From positions 19,530,001-19,594,000 of the forward strand of contig OZ260666.1 in assembly GCA_965285935.1 (NCBI GenBank): 64,000 nucleotides of DNA, written 5' to 3'. The translations under genes were made by a program, and so were the position numbers. This DNA is from Ophelia neglecta (taxonomy: Eukaryota). Under the pieces are notes generated by a model, which did no database searches, was not told the origin of the DNA, and was given only the letters and a program-made list of their open reading frames with translations. Shown here one piece after another: positions 22,626 through 63,418 of this stretch (the first letter of the stretch is position 1; the number at the start of each line of letters is the position of its first letter).

Positions 22626-23310
22626 CCGTCATTTCAAAATGCACACGCTGCAAAAGGCCACTATTACTCAAACGTTAATGTAAAATATATAATGACATTA
22701 TAACCTATTAACATAACTTAATATATTAACATAATATGCCTGTAACTTCAATAAGTAAATGTAGATTTTCTTCTTTTTAACTATATGATAAAGCGTTTAA
22801 TACCTTATGGGCTTTGAGGGATACTTTCAAACAATATGATCATTAAAATGTCTACATTTATAACTGATCATACGATATCATATGATAATTCAACTGCCCA
22901 TAGGTAACTACTGATGATATTGTTATATAATATGTGTTTCAGTAAAAATCACATACGTTTTGCTATTTCCAGGTGCCACATACTTGGATACATGAACATT
23001 TAAGCAAGCTTAAATCAGCTTAAAAACATAAATATGGTTTTCTCTTAAAACCAAACCAAGCATATTGTCATTCAGAACAACTAAACTAATACTTGTGTAC
23101 AATATATATACATTATAACCAGTCTATTTTTAGTGTTCTATTCTTTTGATATTGGCTTAAATATAAATTTGTTGCATGCTAATATTTTTAATCCTAAATA
23201 AGTGTCCGTATATTATCAGTCATGTGTTGATACAAATAAATCCATTGATCTAGAACGTTTGATATTTGGTGGACCATTGGAGATCAAAGATAAACAGCCA
23301 ATGTTATAGG

Positions 23311-24900
23311 TTATACATATCGTTTTATCCAGTCAAGGTACCGAGACACTCGGGTAAAGATCCCGGGTAAATCACACGTCTCCGGCCCACGGCTTGTGAT
23401 CCCGTATACTGTGTACCTGCCATCGCTATCTTCACACTGCAGAGGGCTCCCGGAGTCACCCTGTTAAAATAAAAATAAAATAGGAAAAGTCCAACATTAG
23501 GATATTTCGATGAAAAGCCGTTCGAAGCATATCAATAAGCGAAATGTCGTTCTATCCCGACCAAATAACACCTTCTCTTGACTCCACAATTGAAAATCAG
23601 ATGAAGAATAGCAGAAAATTCAAGTCACTCATATACACATGACTAGATAAAAATATGACATTTGGTCAAGTATATCTAACTTGCCCGTGAGCAATGACTG
23701 AACGCCAGTTCTATAACAGGACCTTGATTTTGCAGTTTATTCTCTTATTGATGTTAAGTATTAGAAAATAAACAATATGAATTATATAAATTTGATCAGA
23801 AACTGAGGACTTACGAGGCAAACAGTTCTGTAGTTTGTACCAGCACACATAGTGTTTTCAGTTAACTGAGATACATACAGTCTGTTGCATGATTGACGCT
23901 CCAACAATGGTACACGTGCAGCTTGCAGTATATTCCTGTTACCAGTTCCTGAAAAAATAATTTAAACAAAATGGTTGATTTTGTTTCTTTTACAAAATGC
24001 ACTGCCTTAGTGATAGCCCTCAAAACTGAGAAAGATAATGGCATTTGGTTATATGTTACCTAAAGGAGCTAGTCATCTTACTATCGTAGGTTTATTTCAG
24101 AATGAAATCCAACATAATTGCAATTTGTACTAATCGGAAAACGACAACATTGATACATGAACAAGCGGCCCACCGTAAGTTAGACCCCATCCTGTGGCCA
24201 CGCAACTAGTCCCTGGTGGGGGTTCTTTCCCAGGGGAAGGAGGCAGACAGATAGGTTGTATGTAATCATTCCAAGTGACAGGAGAAGCAAGGCGAAACAG
24301 CGCCAAATCATTGTCGAACCCGGGAATGTAGTTTGGGTGCTGTATGGCACGGTCAACAGGTATAATACGTTCATGGGAGTCAGGCGTGCTTTGCCTGTGC
24401 TGACCAACTGTCACCGAGTATTGGGAAGTGGATGTACATCGCCTAAAGATAAACCTCCTAGTTATAAAACACAGTAAAACAGGTAATCCAGAGTCATACC
24501 GACCAACATTATCATGGCCATGAACATGTGATAAAAAGGCACCCTTTATCGATTGTCATTACACAAATGGTTATGGTTTTTAAAGTATAGTACATTTATT
24601 TAGTAAATATAAAGTATGTCAATGCACTAATTAGCTTATATATAATAATAAAGGGTGTTACGTACACACAGTGCCCGGCTGAGAGGAGCCACCTGTCTGA
24701 TATCAGCGCTCCTCCACACTGGGACTTGTGTGTGCGATTTACCTGGCACTCTACCATAACCTGCCATGGCCAGTCCCCGTACTCTGCGTCATAACCATTA
24801 ATAATCTCAGCTGGTGCAGTCCCATTCCGATCAGACTTGCGTCTATCAGTCAGGGAGGCCCCCGACGGCCGGTTTTTCACAGGCAAGCCACACTGTCTTC
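23311..24900 (-). CDS. Gene A C-terminal active S1 serine protease domain (4 exons)
   Basis: CGL..PAE|[16 protein letters not shown]; LSAGHC (His57); DNDLALF (Asp102); GDSGSPL (Ser195); [14 protein letters not shown] stop. Confidence 0.94.
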
Positions 24901-27900
24901 CTATTTATCAGGAGACAATTATCACATTGACTAAGAGCAGTAAATATGTCATTCATGCAGATTTAAGTGAACTATACAGTTCTCTTTCATACACAAGCGC
25001 ATTATTTCTCACATCACACCGCGTGCTGTAGATGTCGTGTGCTTTTTGGTTCTGCTACAATTACGTTGCTGACAACTGAATATGATGTCGGCCATTACAG
25101 TATAGCGAAAGAATGACACACATTAACAACATGCTTGAGTGTATAAACATTATTCATTCAAGGTATTTATTGTTTATCAACCAATTTTGTAAAGTTCCTT
25201 AAACTGGGGCTATAATGAATAAGCAAAAATAGTGGACACAAGGGAGACCATTGCTCGAAAATTATCTATTCATCAGGCGAACTGATTAGGTACCGCCAAC
25301 CACATGAACCCTAGTTCCCTAACTGTTAATATTGAAATTGCAATGAAATTAATTATTAGAATCTTTATCGATATCACATGAAATGAGAATTAATCCACAG
25401 TTTTCTATGATGCCAGTCAGGGCACAAAACAAAAGAACTGCCGGTCCACATAGGACATGTAATTATTTAACACAACATATGGCTAGAAAAGAAAAGAGAG
25501 TAAGATATTTATAATATACTAAGAAGTTACTTACCACTATTACAGATGTCTCCGGAGAATCCAGTACCTGAACAATCACAAGAGTACGTCCCTAGTCTCA
25601 CTATACATCTTCCTCCGTTTAGACATGGTCCCGAAGAGCACACATCTTTTGCTGCGATATAAGTACATAGGGCATGTAAGCGGTTTTTGCTATACAACAC
25701 ATGCGAAACATAGTTTTGGATTTTATGGTTTGCAACAAGGGTCTACATGAACATCTTTAGATGGATGAAAGTCAATTGGCATGTAAGTTATTCATTTGAT
25801 TTTACAAAACAGTAAAATAAGTTCATTGAGTATTAAATGTTTGAACGGCGTCTCTGAATACGACTTAGAGCAACTAGAAGGTCAATGAAATAGGTGCTTG
25901 GAAAAGAGCTCCGCCACTTGCTTATTAGCAGAATATGCTGCTTCGTTTATCTATATTGGCGCTTGTGCCCTCATTAACATTATTAGAACATTATTAGAAC
26001 ATTATTTTATGGTGATAGACATACAAGCTGCACTGAATGTTACATACTACTATAAGTATACGAAACCTGTTTGACAGCGATCCCCAGTGTAACGAGTGTT
26101 AGAACAATCACAAGAAGCAGCTCCTGCCCTCACTGTACAAACACCTCCATTTTCACACAAGGCGGAGGTACATTGTTTGACCTCTAAAACAAAATAACAT
26201 ATGGAATAAGAAACAAAATGTCGTTGTGCCAGTGCACCTATCGAAATAGTACATATATTAACTACTCAGCTTTAAACTCAGATATTGGAGACACTGATTA
26301 ACCTGATAAAAGTTATTAACGCTGTGTGATGACACGCGTCTTTATTTTGGTTTAAGGAGTTGTCAAATCAATATATAGAACGTCTCAAACATATTGATAA
26401 CCATTTGTTCGCTCTGCCGGACACCCGTTTGCGGTTAACAGACTATCCCAAAGATTTGCTCCAATAATCAAAAGTCAAATGAAAGTTTTGAAAGGCGTTA
26501 AACTGGTTACCTTCAATCCAATTTACAAATCGAGAGACCTTTGTAAAAAGACCAGGTGCGTATAGACATGTGCCAAATAAAGATCCTGGAATGCTGGCAA
26601 TTCCATACGCCACATAACTACCATCGGCCCGGGAACAATAAAGTCCTCCTCCATAGTCTCCCTTATAGTCAATACAAAATAAGTGTCCAAATAAATTGCA
26701 TACACACTAGTTTGAATTTTAGTTAGGCACTGGTTGGGTTATAATATGGCTCTAGAACGAACTCGTGACAACGCTTTATTATATAATATATTCAAAATGA
26801 ACAGTGCACATTGTGTCTATTTCCTCTGAATATTGTTGTGAACATACCAGGTGGCTTCTCAATATCTTAAACAGTTGTCCTATTCGTTGCGTGCTCATAA
26901 CCTTATTCATTAAACGGTGTGATATGTTATTGTTAAAATCATTAAAGTAAACAACAATAAAGACATGTAATTACGTCACAGACTGAACGCGTGTCATCGC
27001 CCGCACACATCATGTTGTCGTTGACATTGCCTTTATAATACCTGGGCTGATTACACACAGAGCGAGGGACCAGGGGAAGGACGACTTCTTGAAGGAATCT
27101 ATCACTTCCCGTTCCTACAATTCCAGATAAAGCTCATTGTGGCCTTAATTCATATTATATGATTACACATAGTATGCAAACAATGTGACGCTATATTGAG
27201 TAAGACATATCAAGGTAGCCGGATTTATTCTTTCCCTTGTTAGTTCTTGCTCTCTCTAAAACAAGTATGAGGATGGATTAATGTGCGTGGTATAAGGTGA
27301 TTTACTTAAGCTCTTCGCCTTTTTAGTTCTTGCTCTTTCTAAAACAATTATGAGGCTGTTTTAGGTGATTTACTTTAGCCTATAAGTGTGACTCACCTTC
27401 TGTGTCTCCCCAGCCTATTGAATAACAAGTAGAACCAGCTGGCGGTTCTTCGCCCGCTGCCGGGAGGCATATGGGCCTGACGTAGTTGTTCCAAATCATG
27501 GGAGTGGTCAGTCGAATCACCGCTATATTACTGTCCAGGTAATTCTCAAGCCCTTTATAATCTGGGTGAATGAAATACCGCGACACTACAAAGGTTTGCT
27601 GGTGGGAATCAAGCGTATCCAAGTCGTGAAATCCTATTCCAATTTGAATTTTGGATGGCGTCAGATCGTTCCCGGCATTGTCTTTCCTAACAATATAAAT
27701 ATTATGTTAGTTACAGAATTCGTTGTTTTAGTGGGTGAAGGGCACGTCCGGAAGTGACTCTCTGAGAACCGCGGATATTTATAGCACGCATGACGAGAAA
27801 CCAGAAAAAAAGCTAGACTCATTTAATATGACATGTCGTTTAAATATCACAATTCGTTTAATGATGTTTCGATGGCGAAAGAACTATAAGTTGATAAAAT

Positions 27901-44479: not shown

Positions 44480-47400
44480 GTACACCTATTGAAAGAAATA
44501 CAATTAAATACCTCATATGAATTGTTAAAGTGTGTTAAATGGAAATTCGTATAAAGTAGACTGCTGGATAATACAAAGGCATGTCTGGTCTTAGTAAAAA
44601 AAAAGTTGAAAAGGAGAAGTGGTGAAAACATTGCCGTTTATGATTAGCTGTAATAAATATATAGTTCAGAATAATACTGGGATTCATTCTGGCGGATGAA
44701 TAAGTGGCTCAGATAAATGCTTCCTCTTGATCTGTAGGATACATTTAAAATGTGGATACCTGTATCCGGCAATGCAACGGAAGTGATGCAATAGTACAGT
44801 ACAATAACCCTGCCCTAACCCACCAGTTAGAGCAACATTGCCAAACACACATACAGCGCTGAATTAGGACGGCTAAAAATATTAATCAAAAGGGTGCGAA
44901 CTTGGTGTACGTTTCCATTGAAGCAGGCATGTTTTATTTTCGATAATGTGCCTCCGTGCCTTATTCTCGATTATGTGCTTCGTGCTTATTTTCAATATTG
45001 TGCCTCACTATACAATATGATACGATCTAGTGAAAATAGACGACCACTGTTGCCAGCCATGTCTGTAGTACGTTTTTACTACACAGACAAGCGAGCTGGT
45101 CAAGGGAAAATCCCTTTCAAAGTTGTGCACCCTCGCTGTTGTTACAAATCGCTTAAGGCTTTTGGGGCTTAAGTGTGTCGGGACGTCTGAATAGCAAACA
45201 CCTGTACAATTTAACAATTTCCACGAATCGACAATCTATATCTCGCCTCATCATCCTGTAACTTTTATTAAAGTGTAATGATGGTCGGGCGTCTTCAAAA
45301 ACAGGTTTCAGTGTAAATGTATAAGAAACTTAATAGAAATACAGGAGTAATAATAACAAGGACTAGTACGCGGACCGGTTGAGAAGACCACTACCTGAGT
45401 GGTTTATTCCGCGCATAGCGCTTAGTGGAAGCACTTTCATAGGTAATAATTGATAAAATAAGCTAGCCATGCACTATTATAAATAAATGAAAAAAAACAG
45501 TAAATCTCTCCTGTATTTCTTCAATCCCTTGCATGATGCCTGCGTTTTATGATGTATGTTAAGTTATTTTAGTGCTGAGATAGAACGATATCAACATTAT
45601 CCAATTCTGTGTACAATTGGCTGTCTAAATTTTAATTGGCAACGTCGCCCATAATTGCACGTTTGAATGGCAATAACAATGTTGTACCTATTTAACTCGG
45701 TCATACCAGCAAAAAACGCAACTTCGGTACACTGGAGACGTCAATGGAAATGCACACTAAATCGGTCAAAGTTTTCGTTCAGCTCTATTAGCAATCAATC
45801 TGCGCCAATTACCGAGTTCAGTTTATATCGTACATTACATCGTACCAAAATGTATCTAGAGGTCTTAAAGCGTTGTTATTTCATGCCAAGGATAGCTCCT
45901 TTAACATGATGAATTTGCTCTAGCAGGTGCTGTTCTTGTATAAACGTTACGCTGATCTCGGACTCGGTTATGCTCGGCATTCGCTCGTCAATTTAGCCGA
46001 TTATTATCTGCTCGTGTTCATTAGTCGACACTACATCTCGTCGTCAGCTGGATTGATTCACCCCCTTATTCGAGGTAATAGTCTTGAACTCAATCTTTAA
46101 CCTACATTCAATATCAATTCTTCACTTAATACTTTCTTTGGTCTGTGGGATATCATTTCCAGTGTTTTTACATGGCACATTATAATAGCATATTTCTTTT
46201 TCAGCCCAGTGATCAACGTTTCGTTGCTATCGGCAAAAATCATGTATTTCTAAATGCATTGGCGAAGAAATGCAGCAAACATGACTTATTATTAAGCAGT
46301 TTCTATTTAATGCTTTAACTTATATATGTTATCATTTTACCCTCCCCCCCCCCCCCCCGAATACATTGTAGCCAATAAATATTTATATACCATGCTATAT
46401 AACATGTTTATAACATGTTTATTTCTCTCCTTTCATAACATATACATACGTATTGAAGCGTCTGCATAAATCGCGTGCACCCAGCCATGAACGATCTTAA
46501 AGTCAACTTAGTGTAACTATTTTGCCCCATTATCGGGCAATTAAACCTGCATCAAATTGAATTGGCGTCTGTATTAACAATATTGGCCCTCGTTTGTATC
46601 GAATCTAGTCTTCTACATTATTATATTTCTTCCTTATGACAAGCTATTGGATTTATGAAAACATTTCGTCCATACAAACTGGTGTATTTCATGTAAACAT
46701 GCGATCACGAATCTCGAAGACTTCCAAGGAACCTGCCCGCTAGCTGGGTAAATCTTAATATGCACACTTAATTCCTCACAGGTGGAGTGGCGTTCACTTA
46801 AATACCTACTTATATGAAATAAAAATACACTATGTCTCACGTGAGCGGTGCATGGAAAGTTTGCTTTCACCTGGTAGTTTACAGAAGGCATTATCTCAGG
46901 TTTGTCAACAGAAATTATATTAGTCACTATGTCACTATGTACCAAGACATCGCAAAACAAATATTGAACAGAAATATTGCAGGTCTGTTATGACGGGGGA
47001 TGGCAAAGTTCATAGACTCATTATGTCAGGATTCGGAGTTGACTGTCGTCTTTATGATGGCAGTTTGCTAGTCTCTGCCTAGATGAACTAATATCTAACT
47101 AGGCAAAGACATAGGGTAGACACAGAGTGAATCTTATACTTGACAGAAGGTTAATTCTTATATGATCCTATCCACCTTAAACGCTTGTTTTGTTTATTCT
47201 ATGACCGGTAGGGGCCGAGGATCATCCCTTCTGTACTGACGACATTGGCCAAGAAGCCGCCACCGGCGGGCTTTAAGGGCTTTTGCCCTGGGCTTCTCCT
47301 CCAATTAAAACAGATGAAGGAGGCTCCGGCGCCTGCAAACTTTGTCAATATTACTAATTAAGAATATTGGGAACTCTTCTGGGAGGGAAACTTATTCATT

Positions 47401-47589
47401 ATGACGTAAAACATGCATATGCTATGGACACAGCTGCGCTACATGCGATCTTTTCTTAGTTTCTTAGTTTTCAATGGTGTGTCTTATATTCACAGCAAAG
47501 TCCTTATACACATATGCAAAATTACACTTTAATATATAGGCAGAGCTTTTCTGGCATGAACTAAGTTACAATACAACAAGGGTTCTTAC

Positions 47590-47774
47590 CTTCGTACTAA
47601 CTGACATGACCTACCGTCAATGAATATCACGTTTTGCCGTTTTCACACGCACTGACTGTATGTCACGACTTTTCCTCTGTCTACAGAGTCCAGCACCGCA
47701 CGTCTTGCTTTCTCAAACCTCCTGATTGAATGAATGGCCATGAATGGCTTATGGTTAGCACGATTTCTATTTAA
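47590..47774 (-). promoter_or_regulatory. Candidate promoter and first exon of gene A
   Basis: TATA-like TTAAATAG (47774-47767) lies about 29 nt before an Inr-like CCATTC (~47745), and there is a strong donor AAG|GTAAGA at 47590. The signal-peptide exon has an acceptor, so an upstream exon is expected. There is no transcript evidence. Confidence 0.3.
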
Positions 47775-50116
47775 GCGGATCCAGCAGGTATGCACGGGAA
47801 TCAAGTCGTCCTTATTGTTTATTAAAGCAAAAGAAGCGTGGGCTGTTTGGCTGCAAATCAAACCCACCTGAAAGGAGAAATTACAGAAGAACCTACCCCA
47901 CTCCCTTCACCCTGCCCCTCTTAGCAGTTACTTAACAGTGTTACAGCCCCCGAATGCAGCTCTGCCCAAACCCCCCTCACCAGGTGCCCTCAGCCCGCCT
48001 CCCTCTATCAACATCCTATCAGTGCCTCTTACATGTGTCCTCTACCAATCACAAGATGTTTCCTTGTACCAGGGGGATTTTCTTTCTTGGGGGAATTTTT
48101 GACTAAGGCGACCAAGGAGTTTTTTGATCCGAAATACCTGGCATAGAAACATTGATAGCATGTGTAAACATGTGTCGTGGCACGATCAAAATTTATGACC
48201 AAGTTATATGCATGTGTGTTTATTCTTTATCGGGGTACACACCTTCAATATATCTTAATAGAGTGCTGTGGTCATGGTCTATGGTTTCTATGTTGTCAAT
48301 AGCTGTTCGTGAGTCACACGAATGGGATTGTCCAATAGCGGATCTAGGATGGGAGGGGTGAGGTTGGCCGGGTATGACAGTTTCTATCTACTATTAAGGT
48401 TCTCTTGTAATAGTCTAGCGATGGCTATCTTTATTCAGTGCTGTGTGCCCTGCGTTATTCGCTTGGGCGCCCCTATGGAAAGATCAGTTTCCAAGCAGAC
48501 ATTAACGTTAGTTAACATTTGATTTCAAGTTAAGATTGCTATTTGCGAAGTAGCTTGTGATTTGATCTATCGTGATAGTGTTTCGACATATCTAAAGGCT
48601 ACACAATTTGCACTCTGGTCCAAAACGAGTAAACTAAGGACAATAATTCCACCGTTCTGGTTACCCTTAAATATCTTCATACCATTAGTCTAACCCCTTC
48701 CGTTATGTTTTGACCCCTCCATTAACAGGGTTCACATTACCTGTTTACCTTATTAATGTTCTACTAGATCTATGCAGAGGTAACACAATTTCGGAATTAT
48801 TATTTCCGACGATAAGCGAAATATAGCGAACAACTGTTTCAAATCTCTTAATTATTTACCGTCTAACTAGACCTAAGCCGACAAAATGTTATACATGATT
48901 AGTAACAGTAATGCGGAGGAAGACCAGTTTGAGTTATTACTCGAAAAACAACTAAGACACCTCAATACGAATTAAAACCATATACGGACATAAGACAAAG
49001 AATGTTGATTCCCGAAATGTCATTGATACACGTAGCAAGGGGAGAAAACATTATAGGGCGTGTACGTGGTGTCTTGAAAAAAAAATACATTTCGTAATAA
49101 ATTGAAACAAGTCGAGTCTTGGAACAATGTTTGACCCAGACTGGGTTTCTACCTTAGGTCCATATGAAATCTGTCACTGCATCCGGATACAACCGGCATA
49201 CACACAGTATTGCAGATTTATGTGGTGATCACTTTGAACGACCTTTCGCAGTTATTTAATAGGTATAGACGGGAATACGCCAAAAACATGTGATATTTTA
49301 CTGTCACAATAATGTAGTTGCGAAAGTCGTGCATTTGGGATATTGTAACGCGCATACATTGATATAAAAATACAAATACAATCTGTAATATTGATTCCAT
49401 ATACATTTTCGTACTAATTAGTAATACTTATTAATTTTTGTTATATAGCATGCAAAATAGCGTCTTTTAGACCAGGATTTATTGCATCAGTTTAAAGATT
49501 ATGTACACAATATGTTAATGAGAATCAAATCGTCTGCTACTCTCCATAAAGTAGGAAATATCTTGTTCGCATAGTATAAACGAACGTCATCATTCAATCT
49601 GTTAATGAAAGCCTATAATTATCTTTAAAAATATTGAAATTGCATAATAGAACATTGATAACTTTTAAAAAAGACTGAACTCCGAAAACAGAATTCTATA
49701 CAGCACTACTTGATAATTATATCTGTATATACATCGATAAACATATATATATTGTATTATTGTCATACCTTTAAGAGTAAATACTATATTATCGTCAGTG
49801 ATATATTTTATATTTTGTCTAAGACACACTAATTTGTTTTGGAAATAGTCCAACCGGCCCCTAGATGTCAAATAATATTTGTGCTCCAGACGTTTGTTTT
49901 GAAGTTAGATCATTTGAGTGTCAATGGTTACCGGTCGAGAATAGCCTTCAATGATTAACATTACATCTCTGAATTAAAATATGCTATTCGCTTTCTACTG
50001 TAACACACATCATTTCCATCAGAAAGTTAAAGAATTAAATTGAAATAAAAAAATAAAATGCGAAGTTTTCGATGTGGTAAGTGCAAATTTCATTTTGTTT
50101 ATTAACTGGTAATAGT

Positions 50117-51530
50117 TTATACATATTTTCTTATCCAGTCAAGATGGGGAGAGACTCGCGAAAAGATCCCGGGCAGGTCACAGTGTTCGCTCCCACGGCT
50201 GACGATACCGTACACCGAGTATCTGCCATCACTATCTAAACATTGCAAGGGGCCTCCCGAGTCACCCTGTAAGGAACACAGGAAGTGTGTAAGAAGAAAA
50301 ATCACTGGAGCCACACACATGCACAGTACATGGTAAACATTATTCAAATGTAAAAATGAATTATTTGTACTTTAGTCCAGCTCAGATCCGTCTTCCAGTC
50401 TAACTGATCTGGTCAGTGCAATTTCACTTTCAATTTGCCTACCAGACTATTGACTGCTGTAAGTGTTTGGAATATGATTCACATTGCAACAATCGACAAT
50501 CACTTGGTTACCTTGCACACAGTTTTAGCATGGGTACCAGCACACATATTGCTGTCCGTTAATTCACCGCCATACCAATAAATACGTCGACACAGTTTCT
50601 GGTCAACCAATGGTATATTTACTGCTTGCAATATATTGGATCTGTCAGTGTAATTTCCTGGAATAATAAATCGCGCTGTATGCCCTCTGACATTTGTTTC
50701 TTCATTAATTCAATACAGGTTAATATTTCCTTAGTCATTAAATCTTACATTACATCAATAGTCATTTAAACCTATCGGTTGTTCAACGGAAATTTATTGC
50801 CCACCATGGAACAAACCCCATCCTGTGGCCACGCAGTTGGTTCCTGGCGGGGGTTCGATATCTGGAGATGGCGGCAGACAGACGGGCTGTATATAATCCT
50901 TCCCAGTGACAGCAGATGCAAGGTGAAACAAAGCCAAATCATTGTCAATAGTTCGTGGAGTTTCTGTGTAGTTCGGATGTTTGATCACGCTGATTACTCG
51001 TATGCTACGTTCATAAGTATCGTACGTGTCCAATCTGTACTCTCCAACTTTCACAGTGTATTCACGAGGGGAGTTACATTTCCTACGATTCATAAAACCA
51101 AAGTAAGGAATTCTCGTTGGAAGATCAATATAAAGCTTTCTCAGCAAGTGTTTTAAATCTAAATACATTAACAATAGTGTCCGTACATAAATGTAAGAAC
51201 ATATCTCTTACTTTAGGCCTATTGACTTCCTATTTTCTGATTTATGCTAATGGAGGAAAATCATGAGAAAGTAAACAAATAGGGTTGGCTCGTAAAAGTA
51301 ATAATGAATGACTTACGCGCAGTGGCCGGCTGACAGCACCCAACTTTCTGATATCAGTACTCCTCCACACGTGAATTTGTTAGTGCGATTAACTAGGCAC
51401 TCTACCAGGACTTGCCAAGGCCAGTCACCGTACTCTGTATCATAACCATTGACAAGCCTAGCTGGTGTTGGTCCGTCCTCCAGTGAGGGCTCCGATGACC
51501 GGTTCGACATTGCTAAGCCACAGCGCCGAC
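50117..51530 (-). CDS. Gene B C-terminal active S1 serine protease domain
   Basis: PAR|[16 protein letters not shown]; LSAGHC; DNDLALF; GDSGGPL; [14 protein letters not shown] stop. Confidence 0.94.
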
Positions 51531-54500
51531 CTATCATTCAAAGGTTGAGTTTGATTAGATTGATTTGGATAATATTCACAATATGAACTTAATATATATC
51601 ACTAGGGCAAATAACAAAAATACTTTTTCTTCAGCAAGGTGACATTGACACAAGAAGGTAATTTATGTCAATAGTAAGATATAAACACGACTTGGTTGAC
51701 TCAAAAATAAGAACCAATATCATTTACAAGAAAGAACACATCTCAAATGCTAATTATGAATAAAAAAAACATCGAAGAAATGTTAAATTATAGTAATAGC
51801 AGTTTCTAAGTTCCTGTTGGAATCGATGTACAAATTTGAGGCAGGTAAGCTTATTATATTAAAATAGACATGATGCTGACCACTATTGCATGTTCTTCCG
51901 GAGAACCCTGTGTCTGAACAATTACAGGAGAAGGACCCCTGTCCAACAACACACCTGCCTCCGTTTAAACAAGGAGCCGAGGAGCATGCGTCAATGGCTG
52001 GAAAGTCAAGTAATTTTCGTTAATTACGGTTTGCTGTACAAAACACATGTAAAATATAGTAATTTATGTTAATAATTTACAAAGTGAGGTCGGCCACTAG
52101 AAATCGATCTTAGAAATGTATTGTTGCTTATAAAATCGTGCAAATTATACAATCGCACAACGCTTCTTTTGGATGATTCAATAATATACCGCATGTCGTC
52201 AACATGCGAGAGATAGAAGGATTAGAAGGATTTCGACTACAATTGGTTGTTTTCACTAGCCACGACGACATACCTGCCGCATTCACGAGGATGCTCTATT
52301 ATACCCAATTAGAATAAATCTATCATTGGTAGACAAAATAACTTTAAATAGAACATAAACAATGTACCTGTCTGGCAGCGATCTCCTGTGTATCGAGTGT
52401 TTGTGCAATCACAAATAACAACATTATCTCGCACCTTACAAACACCTCCGTGCTGACAGAATGTAGACGTACATTGTTCCATTTCTGCGGGAAAATAGTA
52501 ATAACAATGATAATTATTAGCCACAAAAATTAGCAATAAAGTAATATCGCATATCTTTTCTTTATATGTCCAAGATAACAACCAATAACAAGACGGTCGT
52601 TGTATACAAGATGGCTTTAGGGCGTGTTATGAAACACTGGTTACATTTTGTACTACGGTATAAACACCTCTGTAAACGCATAGTTAATAAAGGCCAGTTG
52701 CCAATAAGTAAAATCGCGACAATTTTAGATTGGGGGTACATGCAGGTCTTCATTAACGTTTTAGGATCGCCCGGGCAGCCGGGAAAAATCAAGTATTGCC
52801 ACTGATCCACCCTCCAATTTCCGTTTGCATAATTTCAAAAAAAGGCCGTCATTTGCCATACCTGCTCCACTTTGTGCCAGGCACGAGTTAAGCATTTTCA
52901 TTTTCCGTGTCTCTTTATTGTTTCTTAATAAATAATCTTATTTTCTAATAGATTCAATACCGCCATGTTACCAATGTTCATTGTATTGCAACCATAAGCC
53001 CGTGTATCTGAGCGTTTAATTTCTTAAAGACTTGAACATAATACTGATGATTAAACGTCTGACACATCTATTATGTCCATAAAAACAAATTTGAGACGTT
53101 TTTTGAGTCAGGATATTTTTTCACATTTATAACTTGGTCGTTTGAAACTAACAATGGAAATTTAAGTCCAGACTTGTACCTTTTATTAGACATTAGGTGT
53201 TTGTTAATTGGGACCCCATGCCCTTGCGTTACCATCAACTAGGTCAACTATCCAAGCACCTCTGCCATTGTTCCTCATACTCAACCCAATTATTATTATC
53301 GTTTAAATGCTTATATTATTATTCCTATTATGATTGTTAATACGTTCCATTTGTTACCTTCAATCCAATCAATAAACCGAGAGACCTTCGTAAAAAGACC
53401 CGGCGCATATAAACAGGTTCCGCCAACAGTTCCTGGCACGCTGGCGATTCCATAGGCAACAAAACTCCCGTCGTCTCGGCGACATTGCAAACCTCCTCCG
53501 TAATCACCCTGAAACAATATAGTTAATTATAACTGGCCATATACGATAAACGTCCCTTTCCTCTGATTACACATATTTTTAATGTACCGTTTTGTACAGA
53601 ACCTACTTATTAGTTATATTATCAAAAACGGCATAAAAGTTAAACCTGATATTGAATAAATGTATCATGCTCAAGCTACATTGACAACACAACACTGCAC
53701 GTGGAACCAATAATACGGTAACGTTTTTGTGGTAAATATATTACTAACATGACGTGGAACAGCACCAAGGTTCATACATACAACACCATTCATTATTACA
53801 ACACCATTCATACATACAACAGTTAACTTTGAGTGACATATACAAATGCCCAATACCAAATTGAAATGTACACCATTCTATGTTCCAAAATATACTAGAG
53901 GGATTTTTTCTTTCTTCTTACCACACTGCCTCTCTGATTGGGAAATCGGGAAAATAATTTATCGTATAAAGCACTTTGGGCGAAACCATAGAAATTATAA
54001 CTACGTCACAAATGGATCTGTTTCTGTCTCCTGCGCACATCATGTTATCGTTGACATTGCCGCTATAATACTCAGGCAGGTTACACTCATATCGAGGGAC
54101 GAGAGGAAGGATGACTTCTCGGAGGATCCTATTGCTTCCCGTTCCTACAAATAACACATTTACTTCATTGTTTGAAATTTTAGATGCTAGCATGAATGCG
54201 AGAAACGAATTAAATGTATTCGGTTAATTTTGCCAATGTAACCGAGTAGGGATGTTTATTTATTAGGTATACTACTACCAAACGAAAGGGCGAAATGACA
54301 TAACGTACCTGACTATATCAAATTGTGCTTTAAGAACTTTAAAAAGGTTAAGTATAAAATTTGGTATCACCTTCAGTTTCTCCCCAGCCTGTGGCATAAC
54401 AAGAAGACTCAGAAGGCGGTTCCTCTCCTTTTGATGGCAGACAGATCGGCTGGACATAGTTATTCCAGTTCAATGGTGTGGTAAGTTGAATCATCGCAAT

Positions 54501-57500
54501 ATTACTGTCTAAGTAATTTACTAGTCCTTTATAATCAGGGTGAAGAATGATACGTGAAACAGAATATGTTTTCTGGTGAGAATCAAGCGTTGACAAATCG
54601 TGAAATCCTACGCCAATTTGACATTTAGATGGTATCAGATCCCTCCTGGCAATAACAACACGAGGTTAGCAAACAACCGTGTGACAGGGAAATTGGTGAA
54701 AACATGTGGACTAGGAATGCTTTTTATTCACATAACGCTGTCAGCTGATGAATTCATTCACTCAGTTAATCCGATTGAAAACAGATGAAATCACATTACT
54801 GAGAAACAATATATTTCTATTTTGTGGAACACTCAGTTAGGGTAACCGCTTGTTATTACCCAATATTGCGACTTTATTTCGAACATATTTACCATGAATA
54901 CCATTGATTTAGTCTGTAGAAGTACTAACTACATAATACTTACACACAAAATGCACCAGTGAGTATAAACTCCGAGGAAATGATAACCCCGGCACACTTT
55001 ATATAGTATGTACCATTCCCATATGTGTTGTAGCTGATTAAAGCGTGCCAAGGCCATTCCCCGTATGAACTGTCCTGTCCTCCGACAATACGTCCTATCA
55101 TAGACCCCTCCCCGGATCCTGCTGCCTCGTTCATTTTAATTTTACCACAGGACACGGCAGGTGTTTCTAAAAATTCCAAAGTGTTATATAAGGTGAAGTT
55201 TTAGGTACATTTACAAAAAAAAACGTTTGCCACACTACTTGAGAAAAAATGTTTGTCTTGCACATTGTGAAAAAATCCACCAAATGACTACACTAAAAAT
55301 TATACACTATATGTTGTGGCAAATCTCCAAGGAAGTAAATCAATAACCTATTATCCTGTTAATTTGTCTTATTTAGTGCCTGCAAAAAAGGATTATAAAT
55401 GACCTCACAGAAAGAAAAAGTTTGCAGGGGAATCATAAGAAAAAAAGTTGTTTGGAGGAGGCAAAATTATGTTTTGAAAAAAAAATCTCACCCCCCCCTC
55501 CCCCTACATTATCAAATGGTCGACCCCTAAGCATGGTAAGATGCTGTGCAAAAAGAAATATGCACAAGCGAAACAAAGCTCACAAAGGTTAGTTAGACAT
55601 GTTAGGCAAAATATATTGCATCATTATTGTTTGTCCCCTATGTCGACGAATTAGATGCTATTATGTGTAAGAAAGACAAACAATGTATTGAAAATACTCA
55701 ATATTCAAGTTAACATACTTTCTAATTTAGTCAGTACCAGATGCACAATAATTAATATATTGGACATTTTCTCACTCGGCCCTCATTTTGTACTTTTGTA
55801 CTGTGGATTCCTTTTTATCGTATAATGTAACATGGATGAAAGGGGCGCTAACTTAATGATACTTATATCGATTGAAAATAAATAAATTTCATTTCGACTG
55901 TGGCTCTACCATGAAGGCATCTTAAAAAGTCAAAGTAGTTTATACTCTAGATCCACTGAGCCCGGCTTCCCGAAACGGTCTCCGATCTTAATAGGATTTA
56001 TATCAGGACTAAAAGGGTTTGATCGGTCTAACTTGCTAAGTTTCTTCTTTAAATCTCGATTTGATCTTATACCGAGCCAATGTTGTAGTATACTGAATCC
56101 TGTGTAATGAGTAGGCCTCCGAAACACCAAATAACGGTCGCAGCTTATCATACTTATAACCCCCCACCCATGTTAACTCCCTGACTAGTAAAAAAATATT
56201 GACATCCAGATCACCACCAACACCTTTTTAGATTCTATAAAGAGTAACCTACATAAATATGTAAAGCAGTGTCCCCTCTCCTTTGACATCTCCCAGATAA
56301 TTTATTTCTATTGATAACCAGGCCAGGCTCACCCAAATATGGATACTTTCGTACTTTTAAAAAACCGCCTATTCATACTCCCAGGCTACTAAACATCCAG
56401 ACCACCGCCAACCAACAACTATTATTTCTGATAAAAATAAGCTATAAAAGTATTCAAACTGTGGCACCTCTCATATATTAACTCCTTGATATTTTGTTAT
56501 ATTGGCATTAGACCACCGTCACCTCAAATGTGTTTACTCTCATCCCTACAACCCACCACACATGCTAACTCCCAGTCGTCTAAACAGAATTGACATCCAG
56601 ACCACCGCCACACAACACCCGTAAATTCTGAAATGAGTAACCTGAATAAATATAAAAAAAAAGTAGTATCTCCTCTAGGTTAACTCCCAGACAATTTATT
56701 TTACTTCAATCAGACCACCGTCACCCCATATCTGGTAACTCTAATAATTTTAACACACCACCCATGCAAAGTGCCAGACTTCTAAACAATATTGAAATCC
56801 AGACCAAAGCAACCAAACTACATTTAATTCCGACACGACTTACATCATTGAATAATAAGGGAAGTGGCGCCTCTCGTATGTTAATTCCCAGACAACCTAT
56901 AATCTATATTGACATTCAGACCACCAAAACCCTTGCTGTCTTTCCTGTCATACTACCAAATCTCCCGCCATGTTAACTTACACAGTACTCAATCTAATTG
57001 ACATCCATACCACCGCCACAACAGAGCTTTTAATTCTGATAACTGTAAAAAATATTAATATGCAAAAAGTGCCATCTCCCCAAGTGTTAACTCCCAGACA
57101 ACTGACTTATGTTGACAGTCAGACCACCATCACCAAAGATGTGGTTACTCTCATACTTATAACCCACCACCCTTGCTAAATGGCCAACTACTAAACAATA
57201 TTGACATCCAGACCACCACCATCCCACATATGTTATATCTATAAAAAAAACCTATATAAATAAGTAAAACAGTGACACGTCTCTAATGTTAATTCCTTAT
57301 TTAGTCTAGCAGGGAGATAAATAAAGAACCTCTGCATATCTAACCAATCCTATATCGTACACCCATACAGCCATTAAAAAGTATAATAACAGGAGTGTAT
57401 ACCTGGCAGACCAAGCCAAATTACTAATTAAGAAGAGTCCATTGATCGGCTCAAAAGTATCAGGTACCAGCACCCACTGGCCCGCACATACATCAATACA

Positions 57501-60500
57501 TCAATCTGCAGCTTCCAAACAGCAAATTACCTTTTAATGCAAACACTAGAACATGTAACAATGACCAGTTGTATCTACCGTTCTGACAGCTAAGACCGGT
57601 GTATCCAGTTCCGGAACAGTTGCAGAAAAAGGCGTTTCCATAACTGGAACATGTTCCTTCATTTGAGCAAGGATTCGGTGAGCAAGGATCACTGTCTGAA
57701 ACGTGGTAATTTTGAGTTATAATTCCACATAGTAAAAAAAAACGAATTTTAATTTATAAATTGTATATGTCTATGGCAAATTTCCCCCCGTTAGATTTTT
57801 AAAACATTATGTATGTTGTCGTAGCCAACATTTGAATAATATTTGTGTTCTTTAACATACCTATTTGACATTTAGACCCCGAGTATCCTGTATCGGAGCA
57901 GTTACATGTGACCGAGATGGGATCCATGTTGATTATACAACCCCCTCCGTTTTCACATGGATCAGACACACAGGGGTCCATAACTAGCAGAATAAGCAAG
58001 GCATGTACCAAGTCAGTAACGAGTACAAGCGCACGTCTCACGTGCATTGTTATGATGATTGAATTGTACGACTAGAATTTATGAAAAACATTTGACATAA
58101 TTGCGGATAATGGAGAAATGCTAATAAAAATGCAAAAATCATAAGCCATTTTTACCCAGGAAGGTGCATGGTGGACGTGTAACCTTTATATCATCGATAG
58201 CAATATCTCCATCGTAAGCCGCCCCTCTTACGCCCTCCCAAGTGAACTGCATTGTATATACATGTACAAAGGAGTTTAATAACAACAACAAAAACAACAC
58301 ATGGTTATGAATCATACATAATGTCTATAACATGAAAGCAATTCAGGATTCCTAACTTAATTAGATTTTCCCCCCAAAATGTTGATTATACATGTCGATA
58401 CATTAAACTTAAAATGGTTTAAGTTAAATGTTTAATAGCAATGTTCATGCGACATGCGGGTAATGAATAAATAGGCAGAACTCCATATATTAAATGACTT
58501 AAGTAACATGGAGGTACTAAACAAGCTATTTAAATATGCCTTGGTGCAAATGGCCCACGAGACAAGGCAGACAGGTCATTAAGATGTTTGTGCGGAAAAT
58601 GCGTTAAAACTGATGGATGGGTGTTTATGTCAAGAGATTGGGCCTGCTTTTTTGCCATTTCCGAAATTCGCATTTCTTTAAGCAGACCTGAAAGACTAGC
58701 TAGTTTTGCGCTTATGTTATTTTCTTTCCTCTAACGACTGGTTATTTTTAAGGCATTCAGGACAGTCCAGGGACATATTGCTTTATTCTATAGGCCGGCA
58801 TGTTTTCTGGCCTAAACGGGTACCCCAAGCAATCATCGAATTATATTAATAGAAACGCTAGTTTGACAATATTATTATATATTCCCAATGACGCACACTG
58901 ACCTTCTGACCAGCGGAGACCGTGACTTGGGTACTCCATGTCTTCCAGGCATTCCCTTTGTTCCCTGTAGAACTCCAATTGTATTTCTGACCGGGGCCGT
59001 CCAAGTATAACGAGAGTCTCCCAACAGAAGAACCGTACATATGATAGGCAAACTCTACACACCAAACGGCACTGCCAGTCAACGAGGGCGTACTTAGTCT
59101 TATTATTGCGTGAAATCAAGAGAGAAATCGTAAATTATTATCAAACAAGTCTAGCTTATTTGCAAAAATAAACAACCTTCTGTACGGATAAATATTCGTT
59201 GGTCGATTAACATGCGGCTTGGCAAAGAAATGTAATGAATGGCCTTGCAATAAACAGAATAAAAGCAATAAGATCTTATTTGTATATAAGGAAAATGTGA
59301 TTTTGAACAATCGCGAAGGTGCGGAGGTCTCCATTACTTTTGGGGCTTTTTGCCATATAGCTGAACTTGTTTATAGTATGGTTGTCCCGCTCACCACAAT
59401 TACTGAAGCAATTTTTTGATTAGGTTGAGTCTGAAGCCCCTTTTACTTTTACGCGTTCATATCAGATAAAAGCACCAGTCCTTTGGAATCAAGCACATCC
59501 GAAATAAGCTTTGTTAACTGCAGTGGTCCAGATTACCGTACTAAGGATAATAACTGCTATTTGGCAATTGCTTCCAAAAACCGGTTGAGACCCTATAGGA
59601 TCTCCTCACGTTATGAATCATAGGTAATCATAATCATAGGTAAAGGTCCTTGTTTCCTTCTAGCTTTATAGCATGAGTAGTTGTGTAAGGACTGAACTAG
59701 CTGGAGTGTTGCGGAACAAATGTACCTAGCCTTGTCTCCTTGTTGTTTGTATGATGCTTCTAGATATACGTAATTCTGTGATCCTAAATGTCCAGAATCA
59801 GGGCCAGTATTTCGAGAAGGTGTAGATCCTCTCATGCGAAACCAATCTAATGTATCTGACTTGTCTTGAACCAAACTGCAGAGGTCATTTTCAAAATCGC
59901 AACTATATCCAGCTGCAAAGACAATAATCAATTAGAAGTGCTCTGTGTGCTGATAAAGTGTTTATACTCTGGGTCCGGTTCTGGAAGGAGCCTTAACTAT
60001 TAAGATAGATGCAAATCAGGATCAAAAGCTTAATTTTCCTTTAATTGCTAATCGGGGTTTTGTAAGCTAAATTCGGTCTTACACCTAACCATTTTGGTTG
60101 TACACGTAATTATGTTCAACGGAAATACACATTTATGCGACCGAAGCTAATCGGTGATAGTTTTATCTTATCCCTTAACATAAAAGCGCTTGCAAAAACG
60201 GGGCCCTGAACATTACACACAAGTAATTTTTTTGAACGATTATGATTGGTCATTGATTTAAGAACATCCTTTAAAGATTATCCCACGGCCCATTGATAAT
60301 AGTGTTACTTCCTGCTAACACAATGCTATTAGCGGTCACTTAATGTCCACGTTAGGTTGTTTTATTAATATCATAAACGTAGACATTGCACGCCACACGT
60401 TGATCAGTCAAGTTGTCCGTTAGAGGGGAAGTGGTAACGGACTGGGGGTTTATGCTGAATTTTTGCAAAACACCGACAATAGAGATCAGGATTTGTCTTC

Positions 60501-63418
60501 TTTCACATTTGTTTTAGAAAATGGAATGACTCTTGGAACAAAACAATAGTTAATAGTAGATCAAACCAAGCACCCTCTCATCACTCCCTGATAATCAAAA
60601 TGGAACCACTCTTATCTATTATTCGGTTTGTGTGAATATCATACAGCTTGTTTTTCATATATATATGCTTATAGCGTGATATAGTAGTGTGTCTATGATC
60701 CCTACAAAATTGGTATAGTTCTACCTGTAACAACTTACTGATAACAAAGTGAAATGGAATGTTCTCAAATTTGGAATTAATATAAAAATTATATGAAACT
60801 ATCCCTACCTATTTGAAACAATTAACCGTAAAATCGACAAACTATGGTTGCTAATTTAAATCTATGGAGAAGAAGTACTAACATTAACTCATACATAACA
60901 TGCAAGAATCTTGCCACACAAGATATTTCAGACAAACAAATTGAAACCTTTTATCGGGAAAAATGTGTATTGCGTCATATTTGTAATATACAGCTTTGCG
61001 AAATAGTATACAACTGATGTACCAAGTTGACATTCTGATCCAGAATACCCTATGTCCGAGCAGTCACAAGCGTAGGAGTTGCCTTTTCTCGAGCAGACGC
61101 CACCGTGAAGACATGGTCGTGAAGCACAGGGATTGTCCGCTGCATGACAAATAAATGATTTTGTTTGAGGATTGTAACTAACTAAAGCAATCCAGTCCCC
61201 GTGCAAGATGTAAAGCAAACCCTGATGAACTCAATATTGGGATTAATATAAATATGGTAATAAAGAACAAGACATATATGTAAATATACAATGACGGGTT
61301 CGTGAATCTAAGGGTATGGTGCGAAAAGAGTACCTCTCGCGTCTACAAAATGTTTACTGTGCGGGAGCTTTTGACTTGTTTATTAATGTTTGTGGGCTGT
61401 GTCTGCTGGTTGCTGATTTAATGCACTTTTCATTGATGTGGCCTTGTCTGGCGGGTATACACTCTCTTGTTTACTTACCAAGTTGACATTTCGATCCAGA
61501 ATATCCTGTTCTCGAACAATCACAAGAATAGGAATTGCCTCTCTTAACGCAAACACCGCCATGAATACACGGCTGGGAATCACAAGCATCGTTTTCTGTA
61601 TGAATAATAAACTTGCATTAAGAAGAATGTAACGAAATAAATACCCGAGTACCGTTAACTGTATTAATTTATTCTTGATCATTAATAACAATATCATTTG
61701 GGAAACAAATATGTAAATACAATTTCGTTTGTAGTACCTCAATGCTAAATACGAAAACAAATGTATTAAGTAACAATATGTCCTTCATCAAAAAAAAATC
61801 TACTCCTAATTTATTAATCTGAAGCTTCCAACTGACATATTGCCGGTTTAGAAAAGTTCCAGCTGGTAATCAACCCCTAACATGCAGACAAAGTGAATAC
61901 AGCGCGTTTTTACAAGTTTGCTAACGCATTATTTTATCTTGATCAGGAGTGAATTATACATGGACGATAGAAGTGTCCTACCAATATCACACCGGGGCCC
62001 ATTGTACCCTGAATTGATGCAGTCACAAGTATAGGACTGCCCGTTACTTAAACAAACACCGCCATGCAAACAAGGGTTCGGTGCACACGGACCAATTCCT
62101 GTCAAAAATGGAATGCATATTTAATGATTGTATTGCGGCATTTTTGGTTTAGGGAACAATATTGTAAGGAAATACTGATGTTTTAACAGCGGTTTTTATA
62201 CTTGTCAACAATAAAATATTTTTTTACACCGGGAAATTCTACGAACTAAATTAACATATGTGTATGATAGTCGGTGAAGGTGGTCAATTAAGTTCTAATA
62301 TATATGTTTATATAACCTTGAGAGCCGCATGGTCCAGAATCCACAGTTATATCATCCAAGGCCAAGTCCCCCTGGCCACCACTCCCTCGCACGCCCTCCC
62401 AGCCAATCTGCAGATATTAAAATATTTGATGAACAACTTTGCAAATAACTAGAGCAAAACAATAAGCATCGCGTGTAGTACAATATATTGTGGCCTATTC
62501 CAATGTTCGGGGTAAAACAAATGATAATATTCTGACTTAATCATGTGCCATTGATTTGCAAGAGGTCACTTTTATATTCTCGTACTCCTGCTCAGTAATC
62601 GTTGCCTAATTCAACTGATTGGACCTTAATCACTAATAAGTCGTGGGGAAGCGCGCTCGGCTCATTCCCTCTTGATTTTTTTCAGTGGTATCCGAGCTGC
62701 GCACTTCTATATTCCAGTCACATGCGGTTCAGACAGGGATTTAGACCCTCTTAACCATTTGTCTCGTTTTGCAAGCTTCTTGATATTGCGTTAGTACTAG
62801 TAATCTAGCAGTTTATGAGTGTATTCTCGCATATTGTAACACACTCTAAAAAAATTTAACAGGTTAATATTATTGTAGACTCGTTGCTTATTTTATTTAG
62901 ACAAGTACTGATTGCTGTAAACTGTGGCATGACACGGCAGATCTATTTTCTGACAAATCAGTGTACTATGTTTTTCAATGTCTTAAAAAATAGTAATAAC
63001 GCGACACTTTGGCATACGTCCCTTTTATAACGTACCATGAGACAAGTAAATGTGACTATAGTTTTTGCTAACGAAAAAAAATGGAAAGCCATTGCCTTTA
63101 CTATTATGGCATGTTTATAGAGGCCACCGTGTAGGTAAACCCTAAACGTAGGAATCAGAAAGTCTTAAACTTAGTTTACCAAAGCTCTTCTGGTCACCAA
63201 CACAGATTGAACTTACCTTGTTATATCCTGCTCCCAGGGTTACAGTTGTGTAGTACGTTGACCAAGACGTCCCCTTGTCACCGCTCTCACTCCAGATAAC
63301 AGACCGAGAAATCCCGGGACCCTCCTTGAATAGTCTCATTTCTCCCATCGACCTTCCGCGCATGTGGTAGGCAAATTCCACACAGTATGAGTTGCTTATT
63401 AAAGGTAGTGTCATTAAC
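50117..63418 (-). CDS. Gene B (5'-partial): paralogous MAM/EGF polyprotease with inactive + active S1 domains
   Basis: Exons: 63418-63217, 62407-62317, 62098-61982, 61595-61479, 61139-61023, 59912-59726, 59098-58903, 58246-58156, 57983-57861, 57695-57579, 55166-54944, 54645-54371, 54144-54005, 53508-53358, 52484-52368, 51997-51881, 51530-51317, 51082-50805, 50657-50512, 50266-50117. All introns are GT-AG and phases are compatible (1056 codons after the first split codon); it ends WIRKYV-TAA. The first visible exon is the middle exon of a MAM domain, so the gene continues beyond 64000. Confidence 0.9.
51881..52484 (-). CDS. Gene B two EGF domains between the protease domains
   Basis: 117-nt exons [21 protein letters not shown] and [20 protein letters not shown]. 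Confidence 0.92.
53358..55166 (-). CDS. Gene B catalytically inactive serine protease homologue domain
   Basis: GR|[14 protein letters not shown]; LTGAFC; DSNIAMIQL; CDGDYGGG. These are the same three triad substitutions as in gene A. Confidence 0.92.
53771..53821. repeat. 18-bp tandem repeat x3 (ttcatacatacaacacca)
   Basis: Directly visible; it explains the MNGVV repeats in the spurious ORF 53671-53859. Confidence 0.65.
56148..57296 (-). repeat. Second copy of the ~200-bp-monomer higher-order repeat, inverted and circularly permuted, in gene B intron
   Basis: 56148-56819 is the reverse complement of 19050-19716; 56837-57296 is the reverse complement of 19756-20214. Confidence 0.88.
57579..59912 (-). 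CDS. Gene B MAM domain + two EGF domains (counterpart of gene A MAM5 block)
   Basis: [10 protein letters not shown].., [49 protein letters not shown]; exons 187/196/91/123/117 nt. Confidence 0.92.
59972..60205. mobile_element. Degenerate PIF/Harbinger-like MITE in gene B intron
   Basis: CTG|ggtccggttctggaaggagcctt ... aagcgcttgcaaaaacggggcc|CTG; 3-bp CTG duplication; the TIR matches 16 of 25 positions. Confidence 0.45.
61023..63418 (-). CDS. Gene B partial MAM domain + three EGF domains
   Basis: [24 protein letters not shown] (202 nt), [15 protein letters not shown] (91 nt), three 117-nt six-Cys EGF exons. Confidence 0.9.

Follow-up and report, generated by a model that had tools for sequence, protein, structure and literature searches.

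The 64-kb window analysed here is the whole stretch from 19530001 to 19594000 of contig OZ260666.1 of Ophelia neglecta (G+C ~38%, no gaps), and it carries on its minus strand two genes, A and B, which are predicted to encode secreted mosaic proteins. In both, a stalk of MAM and EGF domains leads into a tail in which a catalytically dead S1 protease domain and an active one each follow a pair of EGF domains (EGF2-dead-EGF2-active); further copies on the same contig are labelled C to F. Scans of the genome (762 Mb) with the Pfam Trypsin and MAM models placed four Trypsin and 12 MAM matches, each the size of an exon, on the window's minus strand. Queries with Pfam, the protein library, the ESM Atlas and the PDB were single exons, and the joined sequence was used for the open reading frame (ORF) check, the ratio of nonsynonymous to synonymous substitution rates (dN/dS), the alignment and the tree.

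Each type of module has its own exon structure. A MAM module consists of three exons (acceptor-donor phases 1-2, 2-0 and 0-1), which tile the PF00629 profile at 1-59, 61/70-123 and 133-157 and carry the four cysteines per domain of MAM family members. An EGF module is a single exon of phases 1-1 that holds a complete plain EGF (PF00008/hEGF), not EGF_CA. The protease domains are built from four exons (phases 1-2, 2-1, 1-0 and 0-1), tiling the Trypsin profile at 1-43, 43/48-130, 137-176 and 178-220 in the dead and the active domain alike. Exons were chained by the phase pattern fixed for each exon class, since recent unit duplications make introns look conserved.

A 34-exon model of gene A had been proposed by an earlier reading of the DNA letters (the sequence-only reading). 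The joined model has 34 phase-compatible exons on the minus strand between 44479 and 23311, with 1716 codons free of internal stops; its stop codon ends at 23311, the coordinate from which that reading starts. The order of the modules is signal peptide, MAM, MAM-EGF, MAM-EGF, MAM-EGF3, MAM-EGF2, dead S1, EGF2 and active S1, with five MAM domains and seven EGFs in the stalk, and the layout given by the sequence-only reading is confirmed. At window positions, its features are as follows:

44427-44479, minus strand: exon 1, with the start codon and the first 17 signal-peptide residues, ending at a phase-2 donor; identical exon in gene D, same structure in genes B and F.
43741-43763, minus strand: exon 2, a mini-exon of 23 bases in which the signal peptide ends (small residues followed by QQ); S-x-A/S-Q-Q is conserved in A, B, D and F, and the joint is in frame.
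39895-42734, minus strand: MAM1 (exons 42734-42554, 41010-40809, 39985-39895), matching the MAM profile at 1-59 and 70-123.
Within 35257-39208, minus strand: MAM2-EGF (exons 39208-39016, 38914-38713, 38286-38196, 37674-37558), by Pfam and splice phases.
Within 35257-39208, minus strand: MAM3-EGF (exons 36872-36680, 36579-36378, 35979-35889, 35373-35257), by Pfam and splice phases.
Within 31208-34053, minus strand: MAM4 (exons 34053-33861, 33612-33417 with a GC donor, 32811-32721), by Pfam and phases.
Within 31208-34053, minus strand: three EGF exons after MAM4 (32516-32397, 31768-31649, 31327-31208), by Pfam and phases.
29122-30730, minus strand: MAM5 (exons 30730-30544, 30366-30171, 29934-29844) and two EGF exons (29658-29536, 29238-29122), by Pfam and phases.
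28727-28819, minus strand: degenerate EGF-like exon with four cysteines and no Pfam match, between the last stalk EGF and the dead protease.
26511-28219, minus strand: pseudoprotease (exons 28219-27997, 27686-27397, 27114-26975, 26661-26511), by Pfam, triad and dN/dS.
25535-26183, minus strand: EGF pair between the proteases (26183-26067, 25651-25535), by PF00008 and phase 1-1.
23311-24900, minus strand: active S1 domain (exons 24900-24666, 24457-24174, 23948-23815, 23460-23314, stop codon 23313-23311), by Pfam and triad.

The sequence-only reading had also given gene A a signal peptide and no transmembrane segment, and both statements hold. The joined signal peptide starts with basic residues, continues with a hydrophobic core and has small residues at -3 and -1 ahead of QQD. 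Its division is shared across the paralogues, where a start exon of ~50 bases with a phase-2 GTAAGT or GTGAGT donor precedes a mini-exon of 23-26 bases ending in S-x-A/S-Q-Q. A signal peptide on one phase-1 first exon had been considered; scans for it were unconvincing, and comparison with B and F showed the two mini-exons. Neither a transmembrane segment nor a glycosylphosphatidylinositol-type tail was found in gene A, whose chain ends where the protease domain ends: its sole hydrophobic 19-mer belongs to the first protease domain, as the buried strand that precedes residue 57.

The stalk of gene A has been lengthened by a recent internal tandem duplication. Its MAM2-EGF and MAM3-EGF units (37300-39700 and 35000-37299) are 92% identical over 2.1 kb, introns included, and for this reason we conclude that unit duplication is still extending the stalk. 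A GC donor at 33416 (AAG/GCAAGG) closes the second exon of MAM4; the remaining donors in the gene A model are all GT. The degenerate EGF-like exon at 28819-28727 was kept out of the model because a TGA forms at the junction if it is joined to the acceptor at 28219; it is probably decayed and skipped in the gene A product. Gene D has a shorter remnant of it, and genes B and F have none.

Gene B follows the order signal peptide, MAM-EGF3, MAM-EGF2, dead S1, EGF2 and active S1 in 23 exons encoding 1145 residues. Its first three exons (both signal-peptide exons and the first MAM exon) lie past the end of the window, at positions equivalent to 64820-66622. The remainder is within it:

Within 57579-63418, minus strand: second and third exons of the first MAM (63418-63217, 62407-62317), then three EGF exons (62098-61982, 61595-61479, 61139-61023).
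Within 57579-63418, minus strand: second MAM (59912-59726, 59098-58903, 58246-58156) and two EGF exons (57983-57861, 57695-57579).
53358-55166, minus strand: pseudoprotease (55166-54944, 54645-54371, 54144-54005, 53508-53358), with F57, N102, Y195 and the activation site R↓IVGG (the arrow marks the cleavage point).
51881-52484, minus strand: EGF pair (52484-52368, 51997-51881).
50117-51530, minus strand: active S1 domain (51530-51317, 51082-50805, 50657-50512, 50266-50117 including the stop), with H, D, S and R↓LVNG.

The two protease domains differ at the catalytic residues. The whole triad of the first domain of gene A is replaced (H57F, D102N, S195Y), and the copies compare as follows at residues 57/102/195 and at the activation site:

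First domain of A, B and D: F/N/Y, R↓IVGG.
First domain of F: Y/N/Y, R↓IVGG.
Downstream dead domain of E: Y/N/Y, R↓IVGG.
Upstream dead domain of E: R/D/F, L↓IVGG.
First domain of C (divergent): S/D/N, R↓IAGG.
Second domain of A and D: H/D/S, E↓IING.
Second domain of F: H/D/S, E↓IVNG.
Second domain of B and C: H/D/S, R↓LVNG.

The first domain covers the full Trypsin profile with a replaced triad (F/Y57, N102, Y195) and is under constraint, as befits an S1A pseudoprotease. In A, B, D and F it keeps Gly193, Asp194, Cys42, 58, 122, 136, 168, 182, 191, 201 and 220, and a cysteine ahead of the cleavage site. Since this cysteine and Cys122 are kept, the dead domain, once cut, would stay tethered to the chain. 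The second domain is that of an active S1A protease: its exons tile the Trypsin profile from 1 to 220, A, B, D and F all have H, D and S, and GDSG and Asp194 are kept. Its S1 pocket is T189/G216/G226 and hence uncharged, so the enzyme is probably not trypsin-like and instead chymotrypsin- or elastase-like. With the preceding residue included, the activation sites of the live domains read A-E↓IING (A, D), A-E↓IVNG (F), A-R↓LVNG (B), S-R↓LVNG (C) and G-F↓IVGG (distant copies). The X-Glu↓Ile-Ile form is reminiscent of the pro-dipeptide that granzymes and neutrophil proteases carry, although here it is internal.

The sequence-only reading had described two paralogues of shared layout. Genes A and B do share the tail, but they are not a pair: they belong to a larger and partly decaying cluster of at least 6-9 genes over ~630 kb of the contig. 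In the Pfam scans, MAM and Trypsin matches crowd this contig at 19.55-19.84 Mb, 20.14-20.16 Mb and 38.49-38.60 Mb. Paralogues were mapped by placing the exons of gene A on the 210 kb to the right of the window and on short loci farther along the contig. Complete, stop-free ORFs were recovered for A, B, D and F (1716, 1145, 1111 and 2303 residues), each ending in EGF2-dead-EGF2-active, with a number of MAM domains in the stalk that varies from 2 to 7. The dead-then-active pairing on one chain, which the sequence-only reading had put forward, thus recurs in all four of these paralogues, and also in the distant copies at 19.818-19.823 and 20.157-20.162 Mb, where a defective first domain (S195T in one; A57 with N102 in the other) precedes an intact second one with an F↓IVGG site.

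Gene D (plus strand, contig positions 19679000-19692200) is an inverted copy of A, 90-94% identical with introns included, and has two MAM domains, three MAM units fewer than A. Public DNA contigs matching gene A within 23301-29300 show a 6-base in-frame deletion at 28163 and many single-letter differences. Because gene D is two residues shorter than gene A at this spot, these are probably contigs of paralogue D matched at a likeness of at least 95%, not alleles. Gene F, outside the window, has seven MAM domains. Gene C (plus strand, 19614267-19674781) is a ~60-kb run of phase-compatible exons with nine MAM domains (the first without its third exon) and over 60 EGF exons. Near its start lies a divergent dead protease (S57, D102, N195), and at its far end, ~50 kb away across the long MAM/EGF array, is an active-type tail almost identical to that of B; C may be one giant gene or two. 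Gene E (minus strand, 19698259-19724636) has six MAM domains and two dead proteases. MAM and trypsin exons form a second cluster farther along the contig, at 38490000-38603000; in two 3-kb loci read there, no readable catalytic residue is replaced (His, Asp and Ser in one, Asp and Ser in the other).

The left edge of the cluster seems to be gene A. Pfam found no family in 12 chosen open frames (at least 70 residues, out of 37) in the flanks at 1-23300 and 44600-50100, and an Rfam scan of the whole window likewise returned no family.

Each module of the intact copies displays the signature of purifying selection. Among A, B, D and F, the dead domain has a dN/dS of 0.12-0.21, the active domain one of 0.13-0.28 and the last MAM one of 0.17-0.33. 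The EGF pair has 0.08-0.21, a range from which the near-identical A-D comparison is left out as having too few changes for a ratio; synonymous divergence (dS) between pairs of these genes runs from ~0.1 (A-D) to ~1.5. The dead domain is therefore under purifying selection as strong as that on the active domain. In the tree, the seven dead domains group together, as do the five active domains, in two separate clades (support 98/99). Because all the dead domains in the tree fall into one clade, their grouping indicates that catalysis was lost before the family expanded. Genes A and B are members of a lineage-specific, tandemly expanded family of intact genes, each of which appears to encode one large secreted protein.

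We think it likely that the dead domain functions as a non-catalytic binding or regulatory module. Given the purifying selection and the retention of R↓IVGG, Asp194 and the tethering cysteines, a module that is switched by cleavage is a reasonable way to read it. In the mechanism that we envisage, the MAM-EGF stalk would bind a target or self-associate, as MAM domains do in meprin and receptor phosphatase mu. An outside trypsin-like enzyme would cut the pseudoprotease at R↓IVGG, and the new Ile end would pair with Asp194, so that the dead domain adopts an active-like shape and could offer a binding or cofactor surface to the neighbouring protease, as in HGF, protein Z and the clip-domain homologues. 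Activation of the C-terminal protease would need a cut of its own, which would follow Glu in A, D and F but Arg in B, and both cut domains would be held on the chain by the disulfide to Cys122. This specific cofactor mechanism, which is built by analogy, is plausible at a tentative level. Taken as a whole, intact secreted mosaic genes with a cleavage-switched dead domain are the best explanation of the locus, one to which we give somewhat better than an even chance.

Several observations weigh against this explanation. Some copies are perhaps non-functional: the active domain of gene C has an in-frame TGA in its second exon and looks decayed, as does gene E, in which no active protease was detectable in the 6.5 kb downstream. 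A run search returned three public runs covering the gene A stretch, all from one sample and none recorded as RNA; over window positions 23301-29300 they are DNA contigs that span the introns, with no splice joint. No close relative from another species stood among the best 150 library matches (described below), and conservation is shown only among the paralogues of one genome. Analogy and a few residues underlie the proposed roles of the stalk and the cleavage switch and the proposed S1 specificity.

An alternative that we regard as rather unlikely is that these are ordinary secreted mosaic proteases, in which the dead domain is a folded spacer or generic binding module with no switch or cofactor role and R↓IVGG was kept for folding or by inheritance. 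Polyserase-2 offers a precedent, as its two inactive domains have no known switch role (PMC1435904), and trypsin architectures in general are highly lineage-specific without known special mechanisms (PMC6767649); the L↓IVGG of the upstream dead domain of gene E also shows that the site is not invariant. However, R↓IVGG, D194 and the tethering cysteines are found in five of the six dead domains of the F/Y-N-Y type, at dS of ~0.5-1.5, and the dN/dS of the dead domain is equal to or below that of the active one.

We consider it improbable that the family forms a self-contained extracellular cascade, in which fused cofactor-proteases would activate one another. In such a cascade the uncharged T189/G216/G226 pocket would suit the F↓IVGG sites of the distant paralogues, and target recognition would fall to the variable MAM stalks, for instance in immunity, in clotting or between gametes. 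Tandem birth-and-death and the faster-changing MAM domains fit a recognition role, without proving one. The sequence-only reading had proposed a recognition and cascade module, with immunity, clotting, the egg coat or gut/matrix biology as possible settings; drawn from analogy alone, this was overstated, and the biological setting may be immunity, clotting, the gamete coat or the gut.

It is very unlikely that the locus consists of separate genes or yields alternative transcripts, with a MAM/EGF adhesion protein, a pseudoprotease and a protease as distinct products of neighbouring head-to-tail blocks. In favour of such an arrangement are the public runs, none of them recorded as RNA, and the distance between the dead and active domains of gene C. 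The boundaries between the blocks argue otherwise: the last exon of the dead domain ends at a phase-1 donor and not at a stop in all copies, and the EGF exons have no stops at their ends either. Each protease domain opens with an exon that has a phase-1 acceptor and neither a Met nor a signal sequence, and no exon that could supply a start or a signal was found in the introns before the active domain (634, 350 and 207 bases in A, B and F). A single open frame is held across all the blocks of A, B, D and F, through 22-47 exons, and the DNA likeness of A to B or F ends at the predicted exon borders, those of the pseudoprotease exons included. Exon phases, short introns, the absence of internal start exons and conservation lead us to infer expression as a single chain, and the architecture is very probably that of one secreted polypeptide. 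It is scarcely credible that the array is non-functional, whether as recent duplicate pseudogenes or as a gene-model artefact, for although birth and death are seen (the TGA in C, the lack of an active domain in E and, in A and D, the degenerate EGF exon), the frames of A, B, D and F are stop-free over 1111-2303 codons and every module has a dN/dS of 0.08-0.33 at dS of up to ~1.5.

If expressed as modelled, the cleavage-switched mosaic would represent a natural case in which a conserved non-catalytic protease homologue is fused to its likely partner protease on a modular adhesion stalk, within a family whose stalk length changes by recent unit duplication. It would offer a simple system for the role of dead protease domains beside live ones, a question that in insect immunity and vertebrate clotting requires two separate proteins. 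At the level of annotation, it would add a documented case to the lineage-by-lineage invention of trypsin architectures in animals.

The kinship of the family was examined with a dead-domain exon as query. A HMMER search of a library of 1.84 billion representative proteins, which does not include this species, gave 3953 hits, of which the best 150 were examined. None of these 150 combines MAM, EGF and two trypsin domains, though orthologues at ~35% identity could rank lower. Identity to the library proteins was at most 46% (~30-46%) among the matches listed, and the top matches are multi-protease proteins. Local hidden Markov models (HMMs) built from the family found MAM in one of the best 150 proteins and the family-type EGF in one other. 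The sole MAM-bearing protein has the Pfam layout SRCR-MAM3-LDLa14-Trypsin3, and further library proteins checked by Pfam are CUB, LDLa, SRCR, SEA or Fz polyproteases. With the same exon, the ESM Atlas returned trypsin fragments only. Sequence searches of the PDB gave as closest entries ordinary trypsins, prostasin, enteropeptidase, TMPRSS2 and granzymes, with no specific kinship. The sequence-only reading had recognised no characterised protein with MAM, EGF and a protease pair; this stands for the best 150 matches, but the pairing of active and dead domains, as in polyserase-2, and trypsin-MAM mosaics were already known.

Membership of a characterised family (ovochymase/oviductin, polyserase, Nudel or the vitamin-K-dependent clotting factors) is highly improbable. 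It is suggested by the several S1 domains per chain, by EGF-EGF-protease units that resemble factors VII, IX, X and protein Z, and by best library matches that are CUB, LDLa or SRCR polyproteases. Against it stand the absence of CUB, LDLa, SRCR, SEA and Gla modules, the plain EGFs, the low identity to the listed library proteins and, as the closest PDB entries, those of trypsin and type II transmembrane serine protease kind. Asp102 and Ser195 moreover lie on different exons here, unlike in clotting-factor genes.

An EGF-EGF-S1 unit is also found in factors VII, IX and X, in protein C and in protein Z, the last being a dead version that acts as a cofactor. The vitamin-K-dependent factors differ in their Gla domain, calcium-binding EGFs and protease intron layout; reading of the minus-strand translations found no Gla-like exon beside the EGF pairs, and in Ophelia both units are fused behind a MAM stalk. 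HGF and MSP also possess a dead S1 domain, which, once cleaved at the zymogen site, acts as a binding surface and remains disulfide-linked to the chain, but they have no active protease on that chain, and the Ophelia family has neither PAN nor kringle domains.

Tandem S1 domains on one chain, as in polyserases and ovochymases, are predicted here from ORF continuity in the genomic sequence. Ovochymase and oviductin of the amphibian egg envelope, like the CUB-rich library polyproteases, are secreted chains with 2-4 trypsin domains and small spacer modules. Their spacers are CUB, with or without LDLa and Fz, whereas those of the Ophelia family are MAM and EGF, and identity is ~30-41%. Exon-wise Pfam showed MAM and EGF only, without the CUB, transmembrane or LDLa accessory parts of polyserases and ovochymases, and no close kinship to them. 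Polyserase-1 (TMPRSS9), polyserase-2 (PRSS36) and polyserase-3 (PRSS53) likewise have several S1 domains per chain, but they are vertebrate genes that lack MAM and EGF, have no EGF pairs between the domains and form no expanding tandem family. In polyserase-2 and -3 the domains remain on one secreted chain, in polyserase-2 as one active and two triad-deficient S1 domains (PMC1435904). Polyserase-2 places its active domain first, whereas the Ophelia family places the dead domain first.

The clip-domain protease homologues (insect SPH/CLIPA, masquerade-like) are non-catalytic S1 proteins that require cleavage and act as cofactors to an active protease (PMC6901238, PMC4372372). The Ophelia family has no clip domain (the ~25 residues before the cleavage site contain one cysteine, and the exon has no other Pfam match), and its cofactor and protease would be fused in cis rather than made as separate products. 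In Nematostella, at least 15% of all MAM domains are in trypsin proteins, the trypsin-MAM clade is expanded and several proteins carry multiple trypsin domains; across animals, trypsin architectures are reported to show poor conservation (PMC6767649). The Ophelia genes resemble these mosaics and the enteropeptidase-like MAM/LDLa/SRCR polyproteases in joining MAM to trypsin, in lineage-specific expansion and, for some, in multiple trypsin domains, but such mosaics are not reported or seen with EGF arrays or an EGF2-dead-EGF2-active tail. The exact combination was not found among the best 150 library matches, and the layout is a lineage-specific variation on known multi-protease proteins rather than a new category.

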